DNA of 47,333 nucleotides from Vitrella brassicaformis CCMP3155. Its lineage: Eukaryota; Protista; Chromerida. Each line of letters begins with the position of its first letter. Within the stretch, counting starts at the first letter, position 1. The position numbers and the translations under genes are program-made. Location of the stretch: contig CDMY01000582.1 in assembly GCA_001179505.1 (NCBI GenBank), positions 1 through 47,333 of the forward strand, written 5' to 3'. A model generated the notes under the pieces. It saw only the letters and a program-made list of their open reading frames with translations. It searched no databases and was not told the DNA's origin. Positions 18,417-42,243 of the stretch are shown here, one piece after another.

Positions 18417-19656
18417 TCAGTATCCGGCGGCCTTGTCGATGGGCGTCAGCATCTCCTTCTCGCCCGCCAGGAATCGGTCCAGGTTGCCCTCCATGACGTG
18501 CAGGGCACACTCGCTGTAGTCGGGCGTCCAGTCGGCGTTGTGGGCCGTGATGAGCACGTTGTCCAGCCCCCACAGCCCGGAGCTCTCCGGCAGCGGCTCC
18601 ACGTGGAACACGTCAAGCGCCGCGCCCCTGATGGCGCCGCGCTTCAGCACGTCGATCAATGCGTCCTCGTCAACCACTGTGCCACGACCTGCACCCATCC
18701 ATCCATCCATCCATCCACAACACGTACAGGATGGCCGTGCGTGTGTCTGTGTCTGTGTCTGTGTCTGTGTCTATGTCTGTGTCTGGGTGTGCTCTGACCG
18801 ATTGAGATGAAGACGGCAGTTGGCTTCATGGCGGCGAACTCCTTGGCGCCACAGAAGTTGAATGTGTCTGGCGTCCCGGGCAGCGAGCACACGACATAGT
18901 CCGAACGACGGAACACCTGCACAGAACGCACATCACATGCACACAGTCATGAACGAAAGCGTGAATCGATTGCATATGTGTCCAATCCATCTGTGTATGT
19001 GCAGTCTGGCTGACCTCCATCTTTTCCTCCTCGATTTCTGGCGAGAAGACCTCGTCGGCCAAATCGTCAGCGCCCTTGTTCTTGGAGCGCCTGAGTGCCA
19101 GTATCCTCATGCCGAAGGCGTGTTTGGCGATCTTGGCGGTGGCCTTGCCGATGTCACCGAAGCCCACGAAGCCCATGCTCTTGCCGTGCAGCTCGTGCAT
19201 GATGAACTTGTCCCAGTGCCGCGACTTGGTGTTGGCCATGATCCGCGGCACCTGCTTCTCGAAATGCAGCGCCGCAGCCATCGAGTACTCGGCCAGCGAC
19301 CGGCTGAAGGCCCCCTTGGCGTTGGTCACGGGGATGTCGGGCCGGTTCAGCAAAAACTGCTTGATGAAGGGATGCAGGGGCTCCAGGCCGGCGAACCACG
19401 AGTGCACCCACCGCACCTTGGGCAGCAGCGGCCACAGATCAGGGAGGATCTTGGCATCACCTGGCGGCACCCACACGAGCGCCTCGGCCTCGCTCAGATT
19501 GGGGTAGGCGGTGAACTCGGCGAGCGTGTTCCCGAGCAGGATGTCGGCCTTGCTCTCAAGGGTGCGGACGAGGGGGAGGGCGGCTGCCGAGGGATTCTTG
19601 TCCTTGTCGGCCAACACAGCTATGACGATCTTCTGGGATGAGGGACGTCCATTCAT
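18417..19656 (-). CDS. D-isomer-specific 2-hydroxyacid dehydrogenase (NAD(P)-binding)
   Basis: VTNAKG, GFVGFGDIG dinucleotide-binding loop, FISI|GRG (catalytic Arg), AALDVFHVEPLP (Glu), ITAHNA (His); 3 exons. Confidence 0.95.
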
Positions 19657-19688
19657 TGTTGTCGTCTGGGGAGGAGGCTGCGGGGAAA

Positions 19689-19701
19689 GGAAATTGAATG
19701 A
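19689..19701 (-). promoter_or_regulatory. Putative initiator-like core promoter element TCATTCAATTTCC
   Basis: On the minus strand ~33 bp upstream of the dehydrogenase ATG; resembles protist Inr (TCAYTY) plus an AATTT element; a similar TCATTC..GCATTTC occurs at ~14580-14600. Not tested statistically. Confidence 0.3.
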
Positions 19702-19870
19702 GAGAAGCGCCGGTGCGAGCTTGACTGGGAAATTGGACCGTTTCACGGTCACTTCGACGTGCGGACGCGAACGTCTTCACCGTGCAAGCATAGCGACAGC
19801 TGCGGCAAGCAAGGCTGTTCAGCGCCATCGCACAGGCGTCTGCGCCAGGCCAACACGACTGAAGCCACCG

Positions 19871-29546: not shown

Positions 29547-29890
29547 TGTAGAAATGGAAGATGCCAGATGGCTACCACTTGGACGCCTTGACGGGGACCT
29601 TCTGCAGCGCAGATGAGCTGCGAGGCTCCAGGCTGTGGTGCGCCACCGGTTTCATGCAGCACCCTAGGCGACTCTTGCGAGCTTTAGTCAAGCTTGCGAG
29701 GAGATCTGAAGGCGAATCTCCCCCGATAGATGCAGTAGCAGCAGTTGTCAGACATTGCACAGCCAACAGACGCTGCCACAGCCAACAGACACTGTCAGCC
29801 AGTGCCGGCTCCTGTAAGGTACGAGGAGGAGATCTGCACAGCACCGCTCCGGCGCACTTTGCGACGGCCTGAGGCGTCAGCACGGCACAG

Positions 29891-32755
29891 ATGTGGGTTT
29901 TGGCAGCAACAGTCTCAGCAGCGCTTCTCGGGACTGCCACAGCAGGTCAGTGCGGAGGAGATATGGAGAGGATCACAAGAAGGCCGCAGTTAGCGGGCCT
30001 GTCCGTGCTGTTTGTGTTTGCAGTGTCGTTTGTGCAAGATGCGCTGCCGTATGCTTATGACGCGTTGGAGCCGGCGGTCGACGCGCAGACAATGGAGCTG
30101 CACTTTAGCAAACACCACGCAGGATACATCACAAACCTCAACAAGGCCATCGCGTAAGGCCTTGAGAGATGGAAGGGCAGAGCAGAGCAGCGGAGTGGCT
30201 GATGTGTCAATCCATCCTCATCATTTCTCTCGCGTGTGTCTTACTTGTCTGTCAGGACCAATGCGTCGTCGTTTGACAGCCTGTCGCTTACTGACATAAT
30301 CGAGGTCGCTAAAGAGCAAGATGGTACGTAGCCAACCAGCTGTAGGCCGACATGAGCATGCGACATTCTGTGTGTGTGTATATGTGTGTGTGTGTGTCAG
30401 TCTTGGTGCGCAACAACGGAGGCGGCGCCTACAACGTGAGCCGACAGACAGACAGACAGACAGACAGACAGATAGGCTGTGATCCAATCCACACATGCTC
30501 TCACTTGGTGTGTCTTCCTTCCCCCATCGCACCCCGCCCCGCTGCAGCACGATCTGTTTTGGAAGGCCATGGCACCAGTGGACGGGGTCGGCCAGCGGTC
30601 CGCCGCACTCGAACAGGTGAGTCACGCACAGACGACAAATGGCACATCGACTGACTGATCGGTGAAATGCCTCTTCCCAACGTGTGTCCATCCCTCAGGC
30701 TATCACGAGTGCGTTCGGGTCTTACGATGCCTTCGAGGAAGCCCTCAGCGAGGCGGCGGGAAGCGTGTTCGGGTCAGGGTGGGCATGGCTGGTGGTCGGC
30801 CGCACAGGCGCACTCTCCATCATGACCTCACCCAACCAGGTGAGCACGCGGTGAGATCTGTCGGCCTGTGTGTGCACGTGTGTATGTGTGTGTCATCCGA
30901 CCATCCATCCATCCATCAGGACTCTCCCCTGATGGGCCTTGAGGCGATTCCCATATTGGGTATCGACGTCTGGGAGCATGCTTACTACCTCAATTACCAG
31001 AACAGGAGGTCGGCAAGGGAGAGGGGAGGGAAGCGATCCACACGCGCAGCACGTCCATCTGTCTAACGATTCTCTGCTGCTATAGGGCTGAGTACATCGC
31101 CGCCTGGATGAACATCATCAACTGGACACAGGTACGCACAGAGACACACTACACTCGCTTTGCCATGCCAAAAGCTCCCATCCCTTTCTCCCTCCATCCA
31201 TCCATCCACTCGTTCAGGTGTCTGAGAATTTTGAGAGCTACGCGTTGGAGGGCAGCCCGGTGCCATCCCTGACAGAGGAGGAGGCCACCACCGCTCCACC
31301 ACCAGAAGACTCAGACGCAGACGTTCTCAGCGCCGCTGCCAACGGCGATACGCTCAGAAGCAGACAACTCGCAGAGGCAGACGCACCAGGTAGGAGGGAG
31401 GACCTTTGTTGGGCGCCAGGTCATCCGTCCTAAATCGTGCCTTGTGTGTTGACCTGTTTGGTGTGCAGTGGTGTTCGAGCAGGCGGAGCTGCCGTATGCT
31501 TATGACGCCTTGGAGCCGGTGATCGACGCGCAGACAATGGAGCTGCACTTCAGCAAACACCACGCCGGATACATCAACAAACTCAACACGGCTATCTCGT
31601 AAGGGAGACCACACAACAAGAGGACACACACACATCCATCCATCCATCCATTCATTCACAGGACTCTGAGTGAGGTGCCGACTGAGCTGACGGCCCTGCT
31701 GCCGAAGATCAAGACACTCGGCGGTGAGTGTAGCCACGACCATTTGCTTCCCGTCATTCGGCAACACACTGACTGACAGGTCTATGTATGCCTTGTGTAC
31801 GTGTCTCGATGTCAGCTGCTGTGAGGAACAACGGAGGCGGCGCATACAACGTGAGCAGGGCTGGATGCAACAGAAACACATGCATACATACATTTCCCGT
31901 TCCCTCCCGTCCCCTCCCCTGATCTCCCCCTGTGCACCGCTGCAGCATGCCATGTTCTGGGAGACCATGGCGCCCAACGGCACAGCCGCCAGCCAGCCGT
32001 CAGAAGCCCTCATGAAGGCAAGCGACCGACCCACGCCCCCAAGTCCCCACATACCCCTCGAGCACGGACCATTGTGAGGCCATTCACCGTGTGTGTGCAG
32101 GCCATCGAGGTGTCCTTCCCGTCCTTCGAGGCCATGCAGGAGCAGTTCAGCATCCGTGCCGGAAGAGTGTTCGGGTCAGGCTGGGCGTGGCTGGTGGTCG
32201 ACCCCAAGGACCCCCAGAACCTCGCCATCGTGACCACGCCCAACCAGGATAGCCCCCTGATGGACGACGATGCAGGCGACGCCATGATCCCCATATTGGG
32301 TTTGGACGTCTGGGAGCATGCTTACTATCTCAAATACCAGAACAGGAGGTCGGCAGGGCAGGGCAGTAAAGGTCGCGGGCAAGCGGCATCTCATCTGTCT
32401 CTGTGGCTGGCTGTGTGCGTCAACCAGGGCGGATTACATCGCTGCATGGTGGGGCCTGGTCAACTGGGATAAGGTGAGTAGCACTAAGCACACACAACTG
32501 CCTGTGCGGTGTGCGTGTGTCCTGATCCATCCATCCATCCATCCGTCCGTCCGTCAGGTGTCGTCATTCTACGACGAGTATGCGTCCAAGGGCCAGCCCG
32601 TCCCCCTCCTCACCAGCACACAGCAAGGCGGCGCCCAACCAGAGGAGGGCAGCCCCGACTCCTCCAGTGCTCTGTCGGTGACGGCGTCGGTCATGTCTCT
32701 GCTGCTGCCGACGCTGGTCGTGGCCATGGCTGTCGGTGGTGGGGTGCGGTGGTGA
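29891..32755 (+). CDS. Two-domain Fe/Mn-family (Mn-signature) superoxide dismutase with signal peptide and C-terminal GPI/TM-like tail; 16 exons
   Basis: [18 protein letters not shown] signal; both domains carry [58 protein letters not shown] (all four metal ligands); tail ..[31 protein letters not shown]. Confidence 0.92.
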
Positions 32756-34206
32756 AGCTGGTGTCTCGTGTGTCCGCCTTTGCCTGTCTGTGTATGTGTG
32801 TGAATGAATGAATGTTTGTTTAGTGCGTGTGTGCGTAAGTGTTTCTATGGTGTCACATCACACCACGGAGGGGTCGACGTGTCGAGTGTGTGTGTGTGTG
32901 AGTGTATGTGTGGTATCGCAGATCGAGCTAGCAGCTAGTGACTCCCCCGGCTGCCATGCCAGGCCAGGCCAGGCCCATACCTACCTTTGCGATGGATGCA
33001 GCCATGCCATGCCATGCCATGTATGTCTCATATATGTGGATGTGTGTGAGTTTGAGAGTGGATGTGCCTACCGTGCCACCCTACGTACACCTCCCCCGTC
33101 TCCCGGCGTCTTGTGGTCAGTGTCCTTCACTTGCCTCTTCCTTGCTAATGGAAATAGCATGGAAGCGCCGAGATGAAGGACGCCGGCCACAAGACGCCAA
33201 AGGCGGTGCTAGAAGACGCAAACCGGCCTACACACCTACTTCTGCTTTGCCTGTGAATGCAGCAATGCCTTAATGCACGTATCATGCGCGTACACACGGA
33301 TGGATGGATGTGTGGATGGGTGGATGGGTGCGCGTGCGTGTGAAAGCGAGGGCGGTGCATTTTTTGCGCCTGCTGGCCATGGCTCGGTGGGTGAGGGACG
33401 AGATGGTTGGACGACGAATGGATGGACGTACGTGTACGTGTGTGTATGTGTGTGTAATTAGATACATATGTAGATCTGGAAAGACAGCCGACCAAGGTGA
33501 CAATACCTCTGACGGCCAGGGAGGGAGGGAGGGAGGGAGGGATGGGGAGGTGTGCGCGTCTGTCGGTTTTCTGCCTGATGTGCCGATGTGCCGAAGGGCA
33601 TGAGAACCTCTTCTCGTCCTGCCTGGTACAAAAACCCATCTCGTATACATACCTTTTCAGACTAGTGTGCCCATCCGGCCATGTGGCCGGCCAGCCGGTG
33701 CCTTCCTTGCTTCTGCCACATATGTACAATTTTGGAGGTGCTTTTGTTGTGTGCGCTGTGTGTCTGAGCCCGGCGATGGATACAGATCGGTCTCGTTTGC
33801 GTCAGTGCAAAGTTCCGTTTCTCACGCGTGTCGACGCACATATGGGGCGCATACCTCACCGGCACAACCTGATGCGAGATCCACGTGCGAGCTTGGCGAT
33901 CCCTCCAACAGCGTTTACATTTCGCGGCCGTTGCGGATCCCCGCGCGCTCTCCTCTCTCTTCGTTAGCCGTGCGACGACAGCCCTCCCTGTCTCTCTGCC
34001 CTCTGTCTTAGCGGCCAGGCTCCTCTCCCCTTTCTGTCCTCTCATCTGCAGCATTCTCCCTCGACTCCCTCCACTCTCATCGCTTTTGACTCCGAGTCTG
34101 TCTCTCCTCGACTTGTTCTCTTCAGCCAGCCCCTTGTTGTTGTTGTTTCTTCACCTGCCCGCTGCTCGTCTGCGTTTCCACCCGTCGTCCGCCCGCTCCA
34201 CGACCG

Positions 34207-40325: not shown

Positions 40326-41966
40326 TCACTTCTGCGGCGGAGCGTCTTCATAGCCGTAGGGGTTGGTGGACTGCCACTTCCACGCGTTGGCACACGCCTC
40401 CCTGTTCATCACATCAACGATATCCATCCATCAGACACGAACAAACTACATTCACGCAATCCCTGTCATGTGCCGTGTCTTCGTCGTACTGTATGGTCCT
40501 CTTTGCGGTCCAGTTGAGCTCCTTGTTGGCCTTGGAGGGGTCCGCAACGACAGTCGCCAAGTCGCCAGCACGCCTGACACCACACACATACACACAGGGA
40601 ACGAATGGGTGTTGGGTGCTGGTTTGGCTAATCGATTAGGTCTGACCCACCTGGCTTCGATTTTGTAAGGTATTTTGACGCCGGAGGCCTTCTCGAAGGA
40701 GTCGACCATTTCCAGTACCGACACACCCTTACCCGTGCCTATGCACACATACACGTACACGTACACGTACACATGCGCTTCGTCGGTGGTCTCTCTGAGT
40801 GCGTCTGTACCTACCGAGGTTGTGTGTGATGCAGCATGGGTCGCCCTGGAAGAGCTTGGTCAAGGCCGCGATGTGGCCCTCAGCCAAATCCTCCACGTGC
40901 AGATAATCCCGCACACCTGACACAACCACATACACAGACAACACATACGCGTACACGTCTGTAATGTGTGCACACGCACGAGTGCAAGCTCACGTACCGG
41001 TGCCGTCCGGTGTGTTGTAGTCGTTGCCGAACACGCTGAGCTGTGGTCGTCTGCCGACGGCGACCTGCTGAATGTAGGGTAGGAGGTTGTTGGGCTGGGA
41101 GGGCGACTCGCCGATGCGGCCGGAGGGGTGCGCGCCCACGGGATTGAAGTACCGCAGGATGGAGATCTTCCACGACGGATCGCTCTTGTACAGATCCTGC
41201 AATATCTGCAGATGATATATATGATCGACAATGCCATCACATCCTCTCTCACAGACGGCCAACCCCATGTGCTGTGTTCGTATGCATGTGCCCCTTTCTC
41301 CCACACACACACACTCACAGACCTGTTCGATCATGAATTTGGTCCATCCATAGGGATTGGACGGCCCCAGCGCGTCTTGCTCGGTGAGCGGCGTCTCTTT
41401 TGGCGCATACACGGTGGCGCTGGACGAGAAGACGAGCACCTTGCAGCCCGCCTCGCGCATCACTTTGAGCAGCGTCAGAGTCCCCGAGACGTTGTTGGTG
41501 TAGTACTCGAGCGGCATCGCCACGCTCTCACCCACGGCCTTCAACGCCGCGTAGTGGATCACACCATCGAATTTCTGTCGGCCAACCCACCACAACGGCA
41601 CACCGCATAAATATACTCTGTATGGTGTCTGTGCATTGTCCCGTCTCTCTCTCACCTGTTCTTTGAACAACTTGAGCAGCGCGTCTGTGTCGATTGTGTC
41701 GGTGGTGAAGAGCGGGACGTCCTCGCCGGTGATCTGCTTGAGGCGCTCCTTGACCTTGAGCGACGCGTTGCTCAGGTTGTCCAGAATCGACACGCGATAA
41801 CCCGCCTTGAGCAGATGCACCACCGTGTGTGAACCGATATAACCCGCGCCACCCGTACTGCGCACCAGAAGAGATGACAAGTGCATTCGGGGAACCAACA
41901 GAGATCTGCCTTTCCTCGCATCTTTCCTCACCAGAGGATGTGTTTGGCTCCCCCTTCGCCAGCCAT
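40326..41966 (-). CDS. galE: UDP-glucose 4-epimerase
   Basis: [12 protein letters not shown]|[37 protein letters not shown] (YxxxK), [20 protein letters not shown]|GVRDYLHV, R|RAGD, ..WQSTNPYGY. Confidence 0.98.
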
Positions 41967-42243
41967 GGCTGCCCTCAGTGCCGTCCTGCACCCTCTTTGG
42001 CTCTCCGAAGACGACGCACAGGCGGCTCGACACAGATGGAAGCAATCACCCGGTGCTGCCGCCACAAGCAGGAGCAGTGCGCAGCCAACAAGCAGCACAC
42101 TGCGGCGCATCCACCGAAGGGGATCGCCGAATCGTACGCGAGCTAGACTTGCAGATCTCCCCCAGATACACGAACGAATTGACGGCTTTCATGCGACTCA
42201 GGAGGGCCTTCATGCACAGCTGAGTCGAAAACAGCCGACCGAA

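Follow-up and report, generated by a model that had tools for sequence, protein, structure and literature searches.

The locus at positions 29891 to 32755 (+ strand) of contig CDMY01000582.1 from Vitrella brassicaformis CCMP3155 raises the question of whether two superoxide dismutase (SOD) units lying head to tail in the DNA are made as one protein, and where such a protein would act. Textbook Fe/Mn SODs work only as dimers or tetramers, held together non-covalently, in the cytosol and in organelles. On balance, the evidence favors a single-chain, two-domain Mn-type SOD, coded by a nuclear gene, that would enter the secretory pathway and be tethered to a membrane, facing the extracytosolic side. 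The window, which is the whole stretch of 47,333 nucleotides (nt) that was analyzed, resembles eukaryotic nuclear DNA in its ~57% GC and numerous short introns.

One transcript joins the two SOD halves

The hand-built gene model has 16 exons and 15 introns of 63 to 112 nt, of which 14 are GT-AG and one is GC-AG (32018-32100). The spliced open reading frame (ORF) of 1,596 nt codes for 531 amino acids (aa), and this product is letter-for-letter identical to CEM24553.1 (UniProt A0A0G4G7T0; P0384 in our set) of V. brassicaformis CCMP3155, which carries the automatic database names 'unnamed protein product' and 'Superoxide dismutase [Fe]'. Between the start codon at 29891 and the preceding stop there is no in-frame ATG, GTG, or TTG. 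The parts of the gene are as follows.

29706-29890, + strand: 5' untranslated region (UTR), 185 nt; all transcript and cDNA contigs start at 29706
29891-29945, + strand: exon 1, predicted signal peptide (residues 1-18), with the splice 29945|30024 in RNA contigs
30024-31250, + strand: SOD domain 1, residues ~19-222, exons 2-8 plus the first part of exon 9, from Pfam, PDB match, and ligands
30024-30153, 30256-30323, 30401-30435, and 30548-30616, + strand: exons 2-5, domain 1
30699-30839, 30920-31008, 31086-31131, and 31218-31389, + strand: exons 6-9, domain 1 and then the linker in exon 9
31251-31389, + strand: linker between the domains, residues ~223-268, in the last part of exon 9 with a few codons more in exon 10; no Pfam match
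31390-31468, + strand: intron 9, 79 nt, GT-AG, at the joint of the two SOD halves; skipped in RNA contigs
31469-32593, + strand: SOD domain 2, residues ~269-478, exons 10-15 plus the first part of exon 16, from Pfam, PDB match, and ligands
31469-31598, 31662-31723, 31816-31850, and 31946-32017 (GC donor), + strand: exons 10-13, domain 2
32101-32348, 32428-32473, and 32558 onward, + strand: exons 14-16, domain 2 and then stalk and tail in exon 16
32594-32689, + strand: polar Ser/Gly/Pro/Glu stalk, candidate omega region, and short spacer, by direct reading
32660-32671, + strand: candidate omega region Ser501-Ser502-Ser503-Ala504, by direct reading
32690-32755, + strand: hydrophobic tail, residues 511-529 (19 aa), then Arg-Trp and the TGA stop, by Kyte-Doolittle (KD) hydropathy
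32756-32842, + strand: start of the 3' UTR, from a 240-nt contig (32603-32842) in runs X1, X2, X7, and X3

Gene predictors commonly merge tandem duplicates, and if intron 9 is retained, the first frame stops at a TAA (31431-31433); the model could thus reflect two adjacent single-domain SOD genes that were joined in error during annotation. The transcripts argue against this. Three RNA-like runs (X1, X2, and X7) gave transcript contigs of 1,594, 1,658, and 1,601 nt that start from 29706 and carry the joints of the model, including in each case 31389|31469, where 79 nt (GT..AG) are skipped, whereas the DNA-like run X3 gave unspliced sequence with no joints. Three JGI cDNA contigs (L001 to L003; 2.8 to 3.1 kb) have the 185-nt 5' UTR and a single, continuous 530-aa ORF, and all 16 exons are contiguous in them by blastn. 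The second SOD half has no in-frame ATG to serve as a start codon and no signal peptide of its own. Because the splice across intron 9 is present in transcripts and the second half has no start codon, the two-gene alternative that the earlier note had set against its proposal of one spliced ORF on one mRNA is refuted, and an annotation artifact is now extremely improbable. We note that a further, unexpected joint, from 30323 to 31827, stems from misalignment, in which the 35-nt exon 4 adjoins a skipped repeat and the match was taken by the paralogous exon 12; the record coordinates around this joint fit exons 3 to 5 exactly.

Several further features of the transcription unit were observed. 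A minimal upstream ORF of two codons (ATG CAG TAG) lies in the 5' UTR at 29730, and 2.5 tandem copies of a 19-nt unit follow at 29749-29794. The GC donor of intron 13 (32018-32100; AAG|gcaagc ... cag|G) is confirmed by RNA contigs. Introns 6, 8, 10, and 15 each have a (CCAT)n/(CATC)n microsatellite directly 5' of the CAG acceptor (30901-30917, 31189-31208, 31633-31655, and 32525-32552, respectively), and GGAT/ATCC repeats of a similar kind lie downstream at 33298-33330. It may be that the intron-end microsatellites are a lineage-typical substitute for the polypyrimidine tract.

Both halves are Mn-type SOD domains by signature

The Pfam families Sod_Fe_N (PF00081) and Sod_Fe_C (PF02777) are each found twice, with exon-level E values of 5e-10 to 4e-27 and scores of 39.8 to 94.7 bits in both halves (gathering cut-offs of 20.9 to 27), and the precomputed architecture of the cDNA is Sod_Fe_N, Sod_Fe_C, Sod_Fe_N, Sod_Fe_C. 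The metal ligands are His45, His97, Asp182, and His186 in domain 1 and His295, His345, Asp437, and His441 in domain 2. The gateway His and Tyr (KHH..Y) are likewise found in each half, as are the FGSGWAWL strand and the Glu/Tyr of WEHAYY, with KHH..Y and WEHAYY invariant in the alignments; the WEHAYY Glu and Tyr bridge both active sites in canonical dimers, as known from the residue roles in E. coli MnSOD. Judged by these matches and residues, both halves are complete Fe/Mn-SOD folds with all catalytic residues, and the two His/His/Asp/His domains described in the earlier note are borne out by all eight ligands.

Both halves carry the Mn-type signatures NNGGGAYNH and PNQDSPLM, with the outer-sphere Gln in NQD, whereas the Fe-type tandem proteins P0001 and P0002 instead have AAQ..NH and GA.NP. 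The best PDB match is 6gsc for domain 1 (E = 8.5e-67) and domain 2 (E = 1e-65) alike, and each half matches 6gsc/6gsb, 5a9g (Sphingobacterium), and then the MnSODs of B. subtilis, Anabaena, Deinococcus, and E. coli (E of 1e-65 to 1e-50). Where depositors name the metal in the matched entries, it is Mn, or Mn/Fe for two of them (E of 1e-65 to 1e-47). A Mn or cambialistic specificity, as already suggested from the GGG and NQD motifs, is thus well supported by the signatures, although they are an imperfect guide to the metal, given that cambialistic enzymes exist; this counts against a firm Mn assignment.

Between the domains, residues 223-275 contain 12 Asp plus Glu and only 2 Lys plus Arg, together with 6 Pro and 10 Ala, which agrees with the acidic Pro/Ala linker noted before; this region is also Thr-rich. 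The chain is devoid of Cys and hence of free thiols, a point in favor of the proposed reading, and it contains three N-x-S/T sequons. Only two segments are hydrophobic, residues 1-22 at the N-terminal end and residues 502-529 at the C-terminal end.

The two halves arose by internal duplication

Over 233 aligned residues the two halves share 58% identity, and they have seven of eight intron positions in common with matching phases (1, 2, 1, 0, 0, -, 2, 0), one intron having been lost from the second half. The likeness does not end with the fold but extends into the first part of the linker and the stalk (...G-x-P-V-P-x-L-T...), and the duplicated unit was thus the SOD exons together with a post-domain stalk. 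The origin of the gene is an internal duplication of an exon block. In a maximum-likelihood tree of 48 domains, the Vitrella halves are sisters, with 95 ultrafast bootstrap (UFBoot) support and 95 in the Shimodaira-Hasegawa-like approximate likelihood ratio test (SH-aLRT). A quicker tree of 97 rows proved unreliable, since its free search fell 26.7 log-likelihood units short of a constrained one, and the 48-row tree takes its place.

The halves differ from each other with a synonymous divergence (dS) of 0.71 and a nonsynonymous divergence (dN) of 0.33. The matching introns of the two halves align no better than non-matching pairs, the scores being owed to low-complexity repeats that the introns share, which indicates that the duplication did not happen recently.

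The halves are likely to pair within the chain

According to PMC5643376, no functional monomer of an Fe/Mn SOD is known, and the question follows of how two units in one chain would assemble. The ESM Atlas model of the exact sequence has a predicted template modeling score (pTM) of 0.79 and a mean predicted local distance difference test score (pLDDT) of 0.79. About 410 of the 531 residues lie in two folds of ~205 aa and the remainder is probably disordered, so that a pTM of 0.79 is near the ceiling and suggests a confident placement of each domain with respect to the other. An AlphaFold2 run on the whole protein with a 6-row tandem alignment was uninformative (pLDDT of 55.5 and pTM of 0.38), with the N-terminal hairpins unfolded and the linker at a pLDDT below 30; it gives no confident domain arrangement and speaks neither for nor against an interface. 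In a 58-row MAFFT alignment, all single-domain homologues, and even the protein's own residues 19-230, fell on the second half, and the first half was left with ~8 noisy rows. The ESM Atlas has no structure model for two other tandem SODs.

The linker of ~50 flexible residues should be long enough to span any SOD dimer, and it does not force pairing within the chain. Many eukaryotic MnSODs are tetrameric, and these points, together with the unconvincing AlphaFold2 arrangement, leave room for domains that pair between chains, in chains or tetramer-like assemblies, or that work separately. We consider this rather unlikely. Tethering would give a very high local concentration and favor pairing within the chain, both halves retain the Glu and Tyr that bridge the canonical interface, and the whole-chain ESM Atlas score also speaks for a defined packing. 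We regard it as likely that the two halves pair intramolecularly. Of the covalent pseudo-dimer put forward in the earlier note, the packing is plausible from the ESM Atlas model.

The N-terminus points to the secretory pathway

Exon 1 corresponds nearly exactly to the N-terminal hydrophobic segment (18.3 codons) and ends with Thr-Ala-Thr-Ala. Residues 1-22 are hydrophobic (KD of 1.79), with Ala at -3 and -1 before position 19, as expected for the signal peptide that had been predicted. From the predicted cleavage site to the conserved 10-residue start of the fold there are just 7 residues, an acidic stretch, which leaves no room for a chromerid plastid transit peptide; the N-terminus therefore lacks the bipartite arrangement of a signal peptide followed by a transit-like region. 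Published predictions for Vitrella MnSODs are broadly in line with this. The supplement of PMC5643376 (Table S3) lists a Vitrella MnSOD with an 18-aa SignalP peptide and no TargetP transit peptide, for which the HECTAR signal-peptide score is 0.81 and the chloroplast score 0.04; for the two signal-peptide-bearing Vitrella MnSODs, the HECTAR chloroplast scores are 0.04 and 0.019. In the supplement of PMC6920818 (Table S1), a Vitrella MnSOD with cleavage at 18-19 is given DeepLoc 'Extra.', ASAFind 'SP/plast_L', and the author call 'Plast'.

Some of this evidence weighs against a secretory destination outside the plastid. The entries 'SP/plast_L' and 'Plast' are two such points, and a third is that cleavage after Ser20 would place Phe21 at +1, a hallmark of plastid import. 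The signal peptide has no basic n-region, and both it and the GPI (glycosylphosphatidylinositol) signal discussed below were called by rule from the residue pattern. The published entries, moreover, are tied to this gene ambiguously, since the 18-aa signal peptide is assigned to different identifiers in PMC5643376 and PMC6920818, with Vbra_9701 and Vbra_1709 swapped.

These considerations feed an alternative in which the protein is a plastid-associated tandem MnSOD, the signal peptide being the first part of the route into a complex plastid and the enzyme residing in the plastid, or tethered by its helix in the lumen between the outer membranes. The Vitrella plastid has four membranes and is reached via the endoplasmic reticulum (ER); the nearest algal single-domain relatives (P0003 and P0007) have long plastid- or lumen-type leaders, and abundant Chromera MnSODs are suspected to be plastidial by the authors of PMC12830998. 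The 7 residues ahead of the fold and the acidic stretch there, however, give no space for a basic, hydroxylated transit peptide, TargetP and HECTAR do not report one, DeepLoc gives 'Extra.' for the signal-peptide-bearing Vitrella MnSODs, and the SOD bound to photosystem I in Vitrella is another protein, an FeSOD. A plastid location is therefore improbable, and we regard entry into the secretory pathway as very likely.

The C-terminal tail resembles a GPI-attachment signal

Domain 2 is followed by a polar, acidic stalk of Ser, Thr, Gln, Gly, Pro, and Glu that runs into Asp-Ser-Ser-Ser-Ala. After Ser501-Ser-Ser-Ala there is a spacer of 6 to 7 residues, then 19 mostly hydrophobic residues, and the chain ends with Arg-Trp; residues 502-529 have a KD of 2.42. 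Within the hydrophobic stretch lie Pro, Ser, and Thr as well as three consecutive Gly, and only 2 residues separate its end from the C-terminus. By rule, this layout fits a classical GPI-attachment signal. Among 476 fetched SOD-family proteins, a tail of this kind occurs only in this Vitrella cluster and in a dinoflagellate tandem protein, and GPI-anchor synthesis is reported to be conserved in chromerids in passages of PMC4501334.

A second expressed variant bears on this signal. The protein P0153 is identical to the product of this gene up to residue 491, and its tail then differs by 8 substitutions and a 2-aa indel with the GPI-like pattern kept. At the nucleotide level the variant and the window are 98 to 100% identical through exon 15, and the last exon and 3' UTR (L001:1582-2891 against window 32556-33873) are about 72 to 79% identical with many indels. 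Both variants are found in transcriptomes. It may be an allele whose recombination boundary is sharp, or else a second locus homogenized by gene conversion. A tail that varies in sequence while its pattern stays is the behavior expected of a signal that is read by its physicochemistry.

It counts against the GPI assignment that the tail could be an ordinary transmembrane helix: 19 hydrophobic residues followed by Arg suffice to span a membrane. The protein could then be a type I membrane protein with a permanent helix, its SOD domains facing either the cell exterior or the lumen of the ER, Golgi, or vacuole; if the tail were instead clipped, the enzyme would be shed or soluble. The related diatom-like tandem P0270 has a signal peptide and no tail, and the GPI signal is a call by rule. 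Set against these are the Pro, Ser, Thr, and Gly-Gly-Gly in the segment, the lack of a cytosolic domain behind it, just 2 residues being left before the C-terminus, the Ser-Ser-Ser-Ala at the right distance for a classical GPI layout, and the pattern kept across the two expressed variants. A permanent helix or a shed enzyme is therefore the less favored outcome, although it remains a serious contender. Tethering to a membrane in one form or another is likely, GPI attachment specifically is an even bet, and residence at the cell surface is about as likely or slightly less so. The GPI-like anchor of the earlier note thus stands insofar as the small residues, spacer, and hydrophobic tail fit the rule, a single-pass transmembrane anchor being equally possible.

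Tandem Fe/Mn SODs are rare and probably arose repeatedly

Additional tandem Fe/Mn-SOD chains are present in Dinoflagellata sp. TGD (P0269), in a diatom-like Logan transcript (P0270), and in the oomycetes Lagenidium giganteum (DBA01410.1; P0271) and Albugo candida (P0272), and there are Fe-type SOD fusions with other domains (P0001, P0002, and P0278). This census is a lower bound, with up to 8000 candidates scored per protein search. The dinoflagellate P0269 has a hydrophobic C-terminal tail and an N-terminus without a signal peptide, which is possibly incomplete; P0270, with its signal peptide and no tail, is presumably soluble and secreted; and the oomycete tandems have neither a signal peptide nor a tail. 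Among the matches listed, no other protein has the full set of signal peptide, two MnSOD units, and GPI-like tail, and P0269 comes closest.

The tree places these tandems apart. The halves of P0269 fall in a 100/99 clade (UFBoot/SH-aLRT) with a single-domain Alexandrium SOD and the Vitrella single-domain MnSOD P0414, those of P0270 are sisters (98/92) beside a Nitzschia SOD, and the Lagenidium and Albugo tandems form a 100/99 clade of their own. Four independent head-to-tail fusions would be the simplest reading of these groupings, and we favor it. A grouping of the first Vitrella domain with the first dinoflagellate domain withstands an approximately unbiased test (p = 0.26), so that an ancient fusion shared with the dinoflagellate and followed by gene conversion is possible.

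A literature search on tandem, duplicated, or GPI-anchored Fe/Mn SODs found no relevant description. This protein is counted as 'MnSOD' in PMC5643376 and PMC6920818, and the passages and supplementary tables consulted mention neither two domains nor a C-terminal tail. The tandem layout thus seems to be rare and undescribed in print, though the protein is deposited; the novelty suggested by the earlier note appears to hold for the printed literature and is qualified by the tandem Fe/Mn SODs, this one included, that are already in databases.

We also note some SOD-family proteins of other builds. P0064, P0116, and P0148 are Lys/Asn-rich fusions of 362 to 868 aa with one MnSOD domain and long further regions. 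The Fe-type tandems P0001 and P0002 reach 1217 aa and have a C-terminal module common to both. Clusters of ~509-aa SOD-family proteins in the ESM Atlas carry mostly viral labels.

Neighboring ORFs

Two other long ORFs of the window have Pfam matches: NAD-dependent epimerase/dehydratase (40990-42045, - strand; E = 2e-33) and D-2-hydroxyacid dehydrogenase NAD-binding domain (18826-19752, - strand; E = 4e-13). Five other long ORFs in the window, including those in the low-GC stretches at 2 to 4 kb and 27 to 28 kb, have no Pfam match.

Proposed mode of action and relation to known SODs

We propose that the chain would enter the ER, where the signal peptide would be cleaved, both domains would fold, and Mn2+ would be loaded in the lumen of the ER or Golgi. 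The halves would then pair through the canonical Fe/Mn-SOD dimer interface, the WEHAYY Glu of one unit completing the active site of the other; this would make a covalent heterodimer that assembles independently of concentration. The C-terminal signal would be exchanged for a GPI anchor at one of Ser501 to Ser503, or else the tail would be kept as a single-pass anchor. The enzyme would in this way come to lie on the extracytosolic face of a membrane, most likely at the cell surface, on a flexible stalk, and would convert external superoxide to O2 and H2O2.

In their fold, the Vitrella domains resemble the dimeric MnSODs (6gsc/6gsb, 5a9g, B. subtilis 2rcv, Anabaena 1gv3, and E. coli 1vew), with the same two subdomains, ligands, NQD Gln, GGG...NH, and bridging Glu/Tyr. 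Those enzymes are chains of ~200 aa that assemble non-covalently and are mostly cytosolic or organellar, whereas the Vitrella protein has two diverged copies in one chain together with a signal peptide, linker, stalk, and tail. An analogy for the proposed logic is found in another SOD family. Extracellular or GPI-anchored SODs include Dictyostelium SodC, animal EC-SOD, and the Cu-only SOD5 family of fungi, and to our knowledge the role of an ecto-enzyme is so far known only for such Cu-containing SODs. In these too, a signal peptide and a C-terminal anchor bring the enzyme to the outer face; they are, however, Cu/Zn- or Cu-only beta-barrels with a different fold and metal, in contrast to the tandem alpha/beta protein of the Fe/Mn family in Vitrella. 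Fusarium Sod5 is an example of the fungal type (PMC7960929).

The obligate pairing of two different SOD units also has parallels, in PsaSOD1 and PsaSOD2 on photosystem I of Chromera velia, a close relative of Vitrella (PMC12830998), and in FSD2 and FSD3 of Arabidopsis. These are separate Fe-type polypeptides with bipartite plastid leaders that are bound to photosystem I or the nucleoid, whereas the Vitrella halves form one Mn-type chain. A SOD bound to photosystem I, as in Chromera, was considered as an identity for the Vitrella protein and rejected; the photosystem I SOD of Vitrella is the 37-kDa FeSOD Vbra_10461.

A natural single-chain SOD would offer a model for inter-subunit coupling, in which the bridging Glu-His network could be mutated in one half only. 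Fusions of this kind recur in dinoflagellates, oomycetes, and diatom-like organisms, which suggests that selection favors the arrangement in general. In its fullest form, our proposal is that a GPI-anchored, single-chain, heterodimeric MnSOD at the cell surface sets the balance of superoxide and H2O2 at the interface of the alga with coral or seawater, and that the fusion arose independently in at least four protist lineages, the covalent dimer staying assembled in dilute extracytosolic settings; taken as a whole, this is possible and put forward tentatively. If the protein lies on the cell exterior, it would be a Fe/Mn-family counterpart of the Cu-only surface SODs of fungi. Extracellular superoxide is made and controlled by many phytoplankton and corals, and the enzymes that degrade it are largely unidentified (for example, PMC5150980 and PMC6247811). 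A surface MnSOD in the coral-associated alga V. brassicaformis would be a concrete candidate for the degradation of extracellular superoxide.

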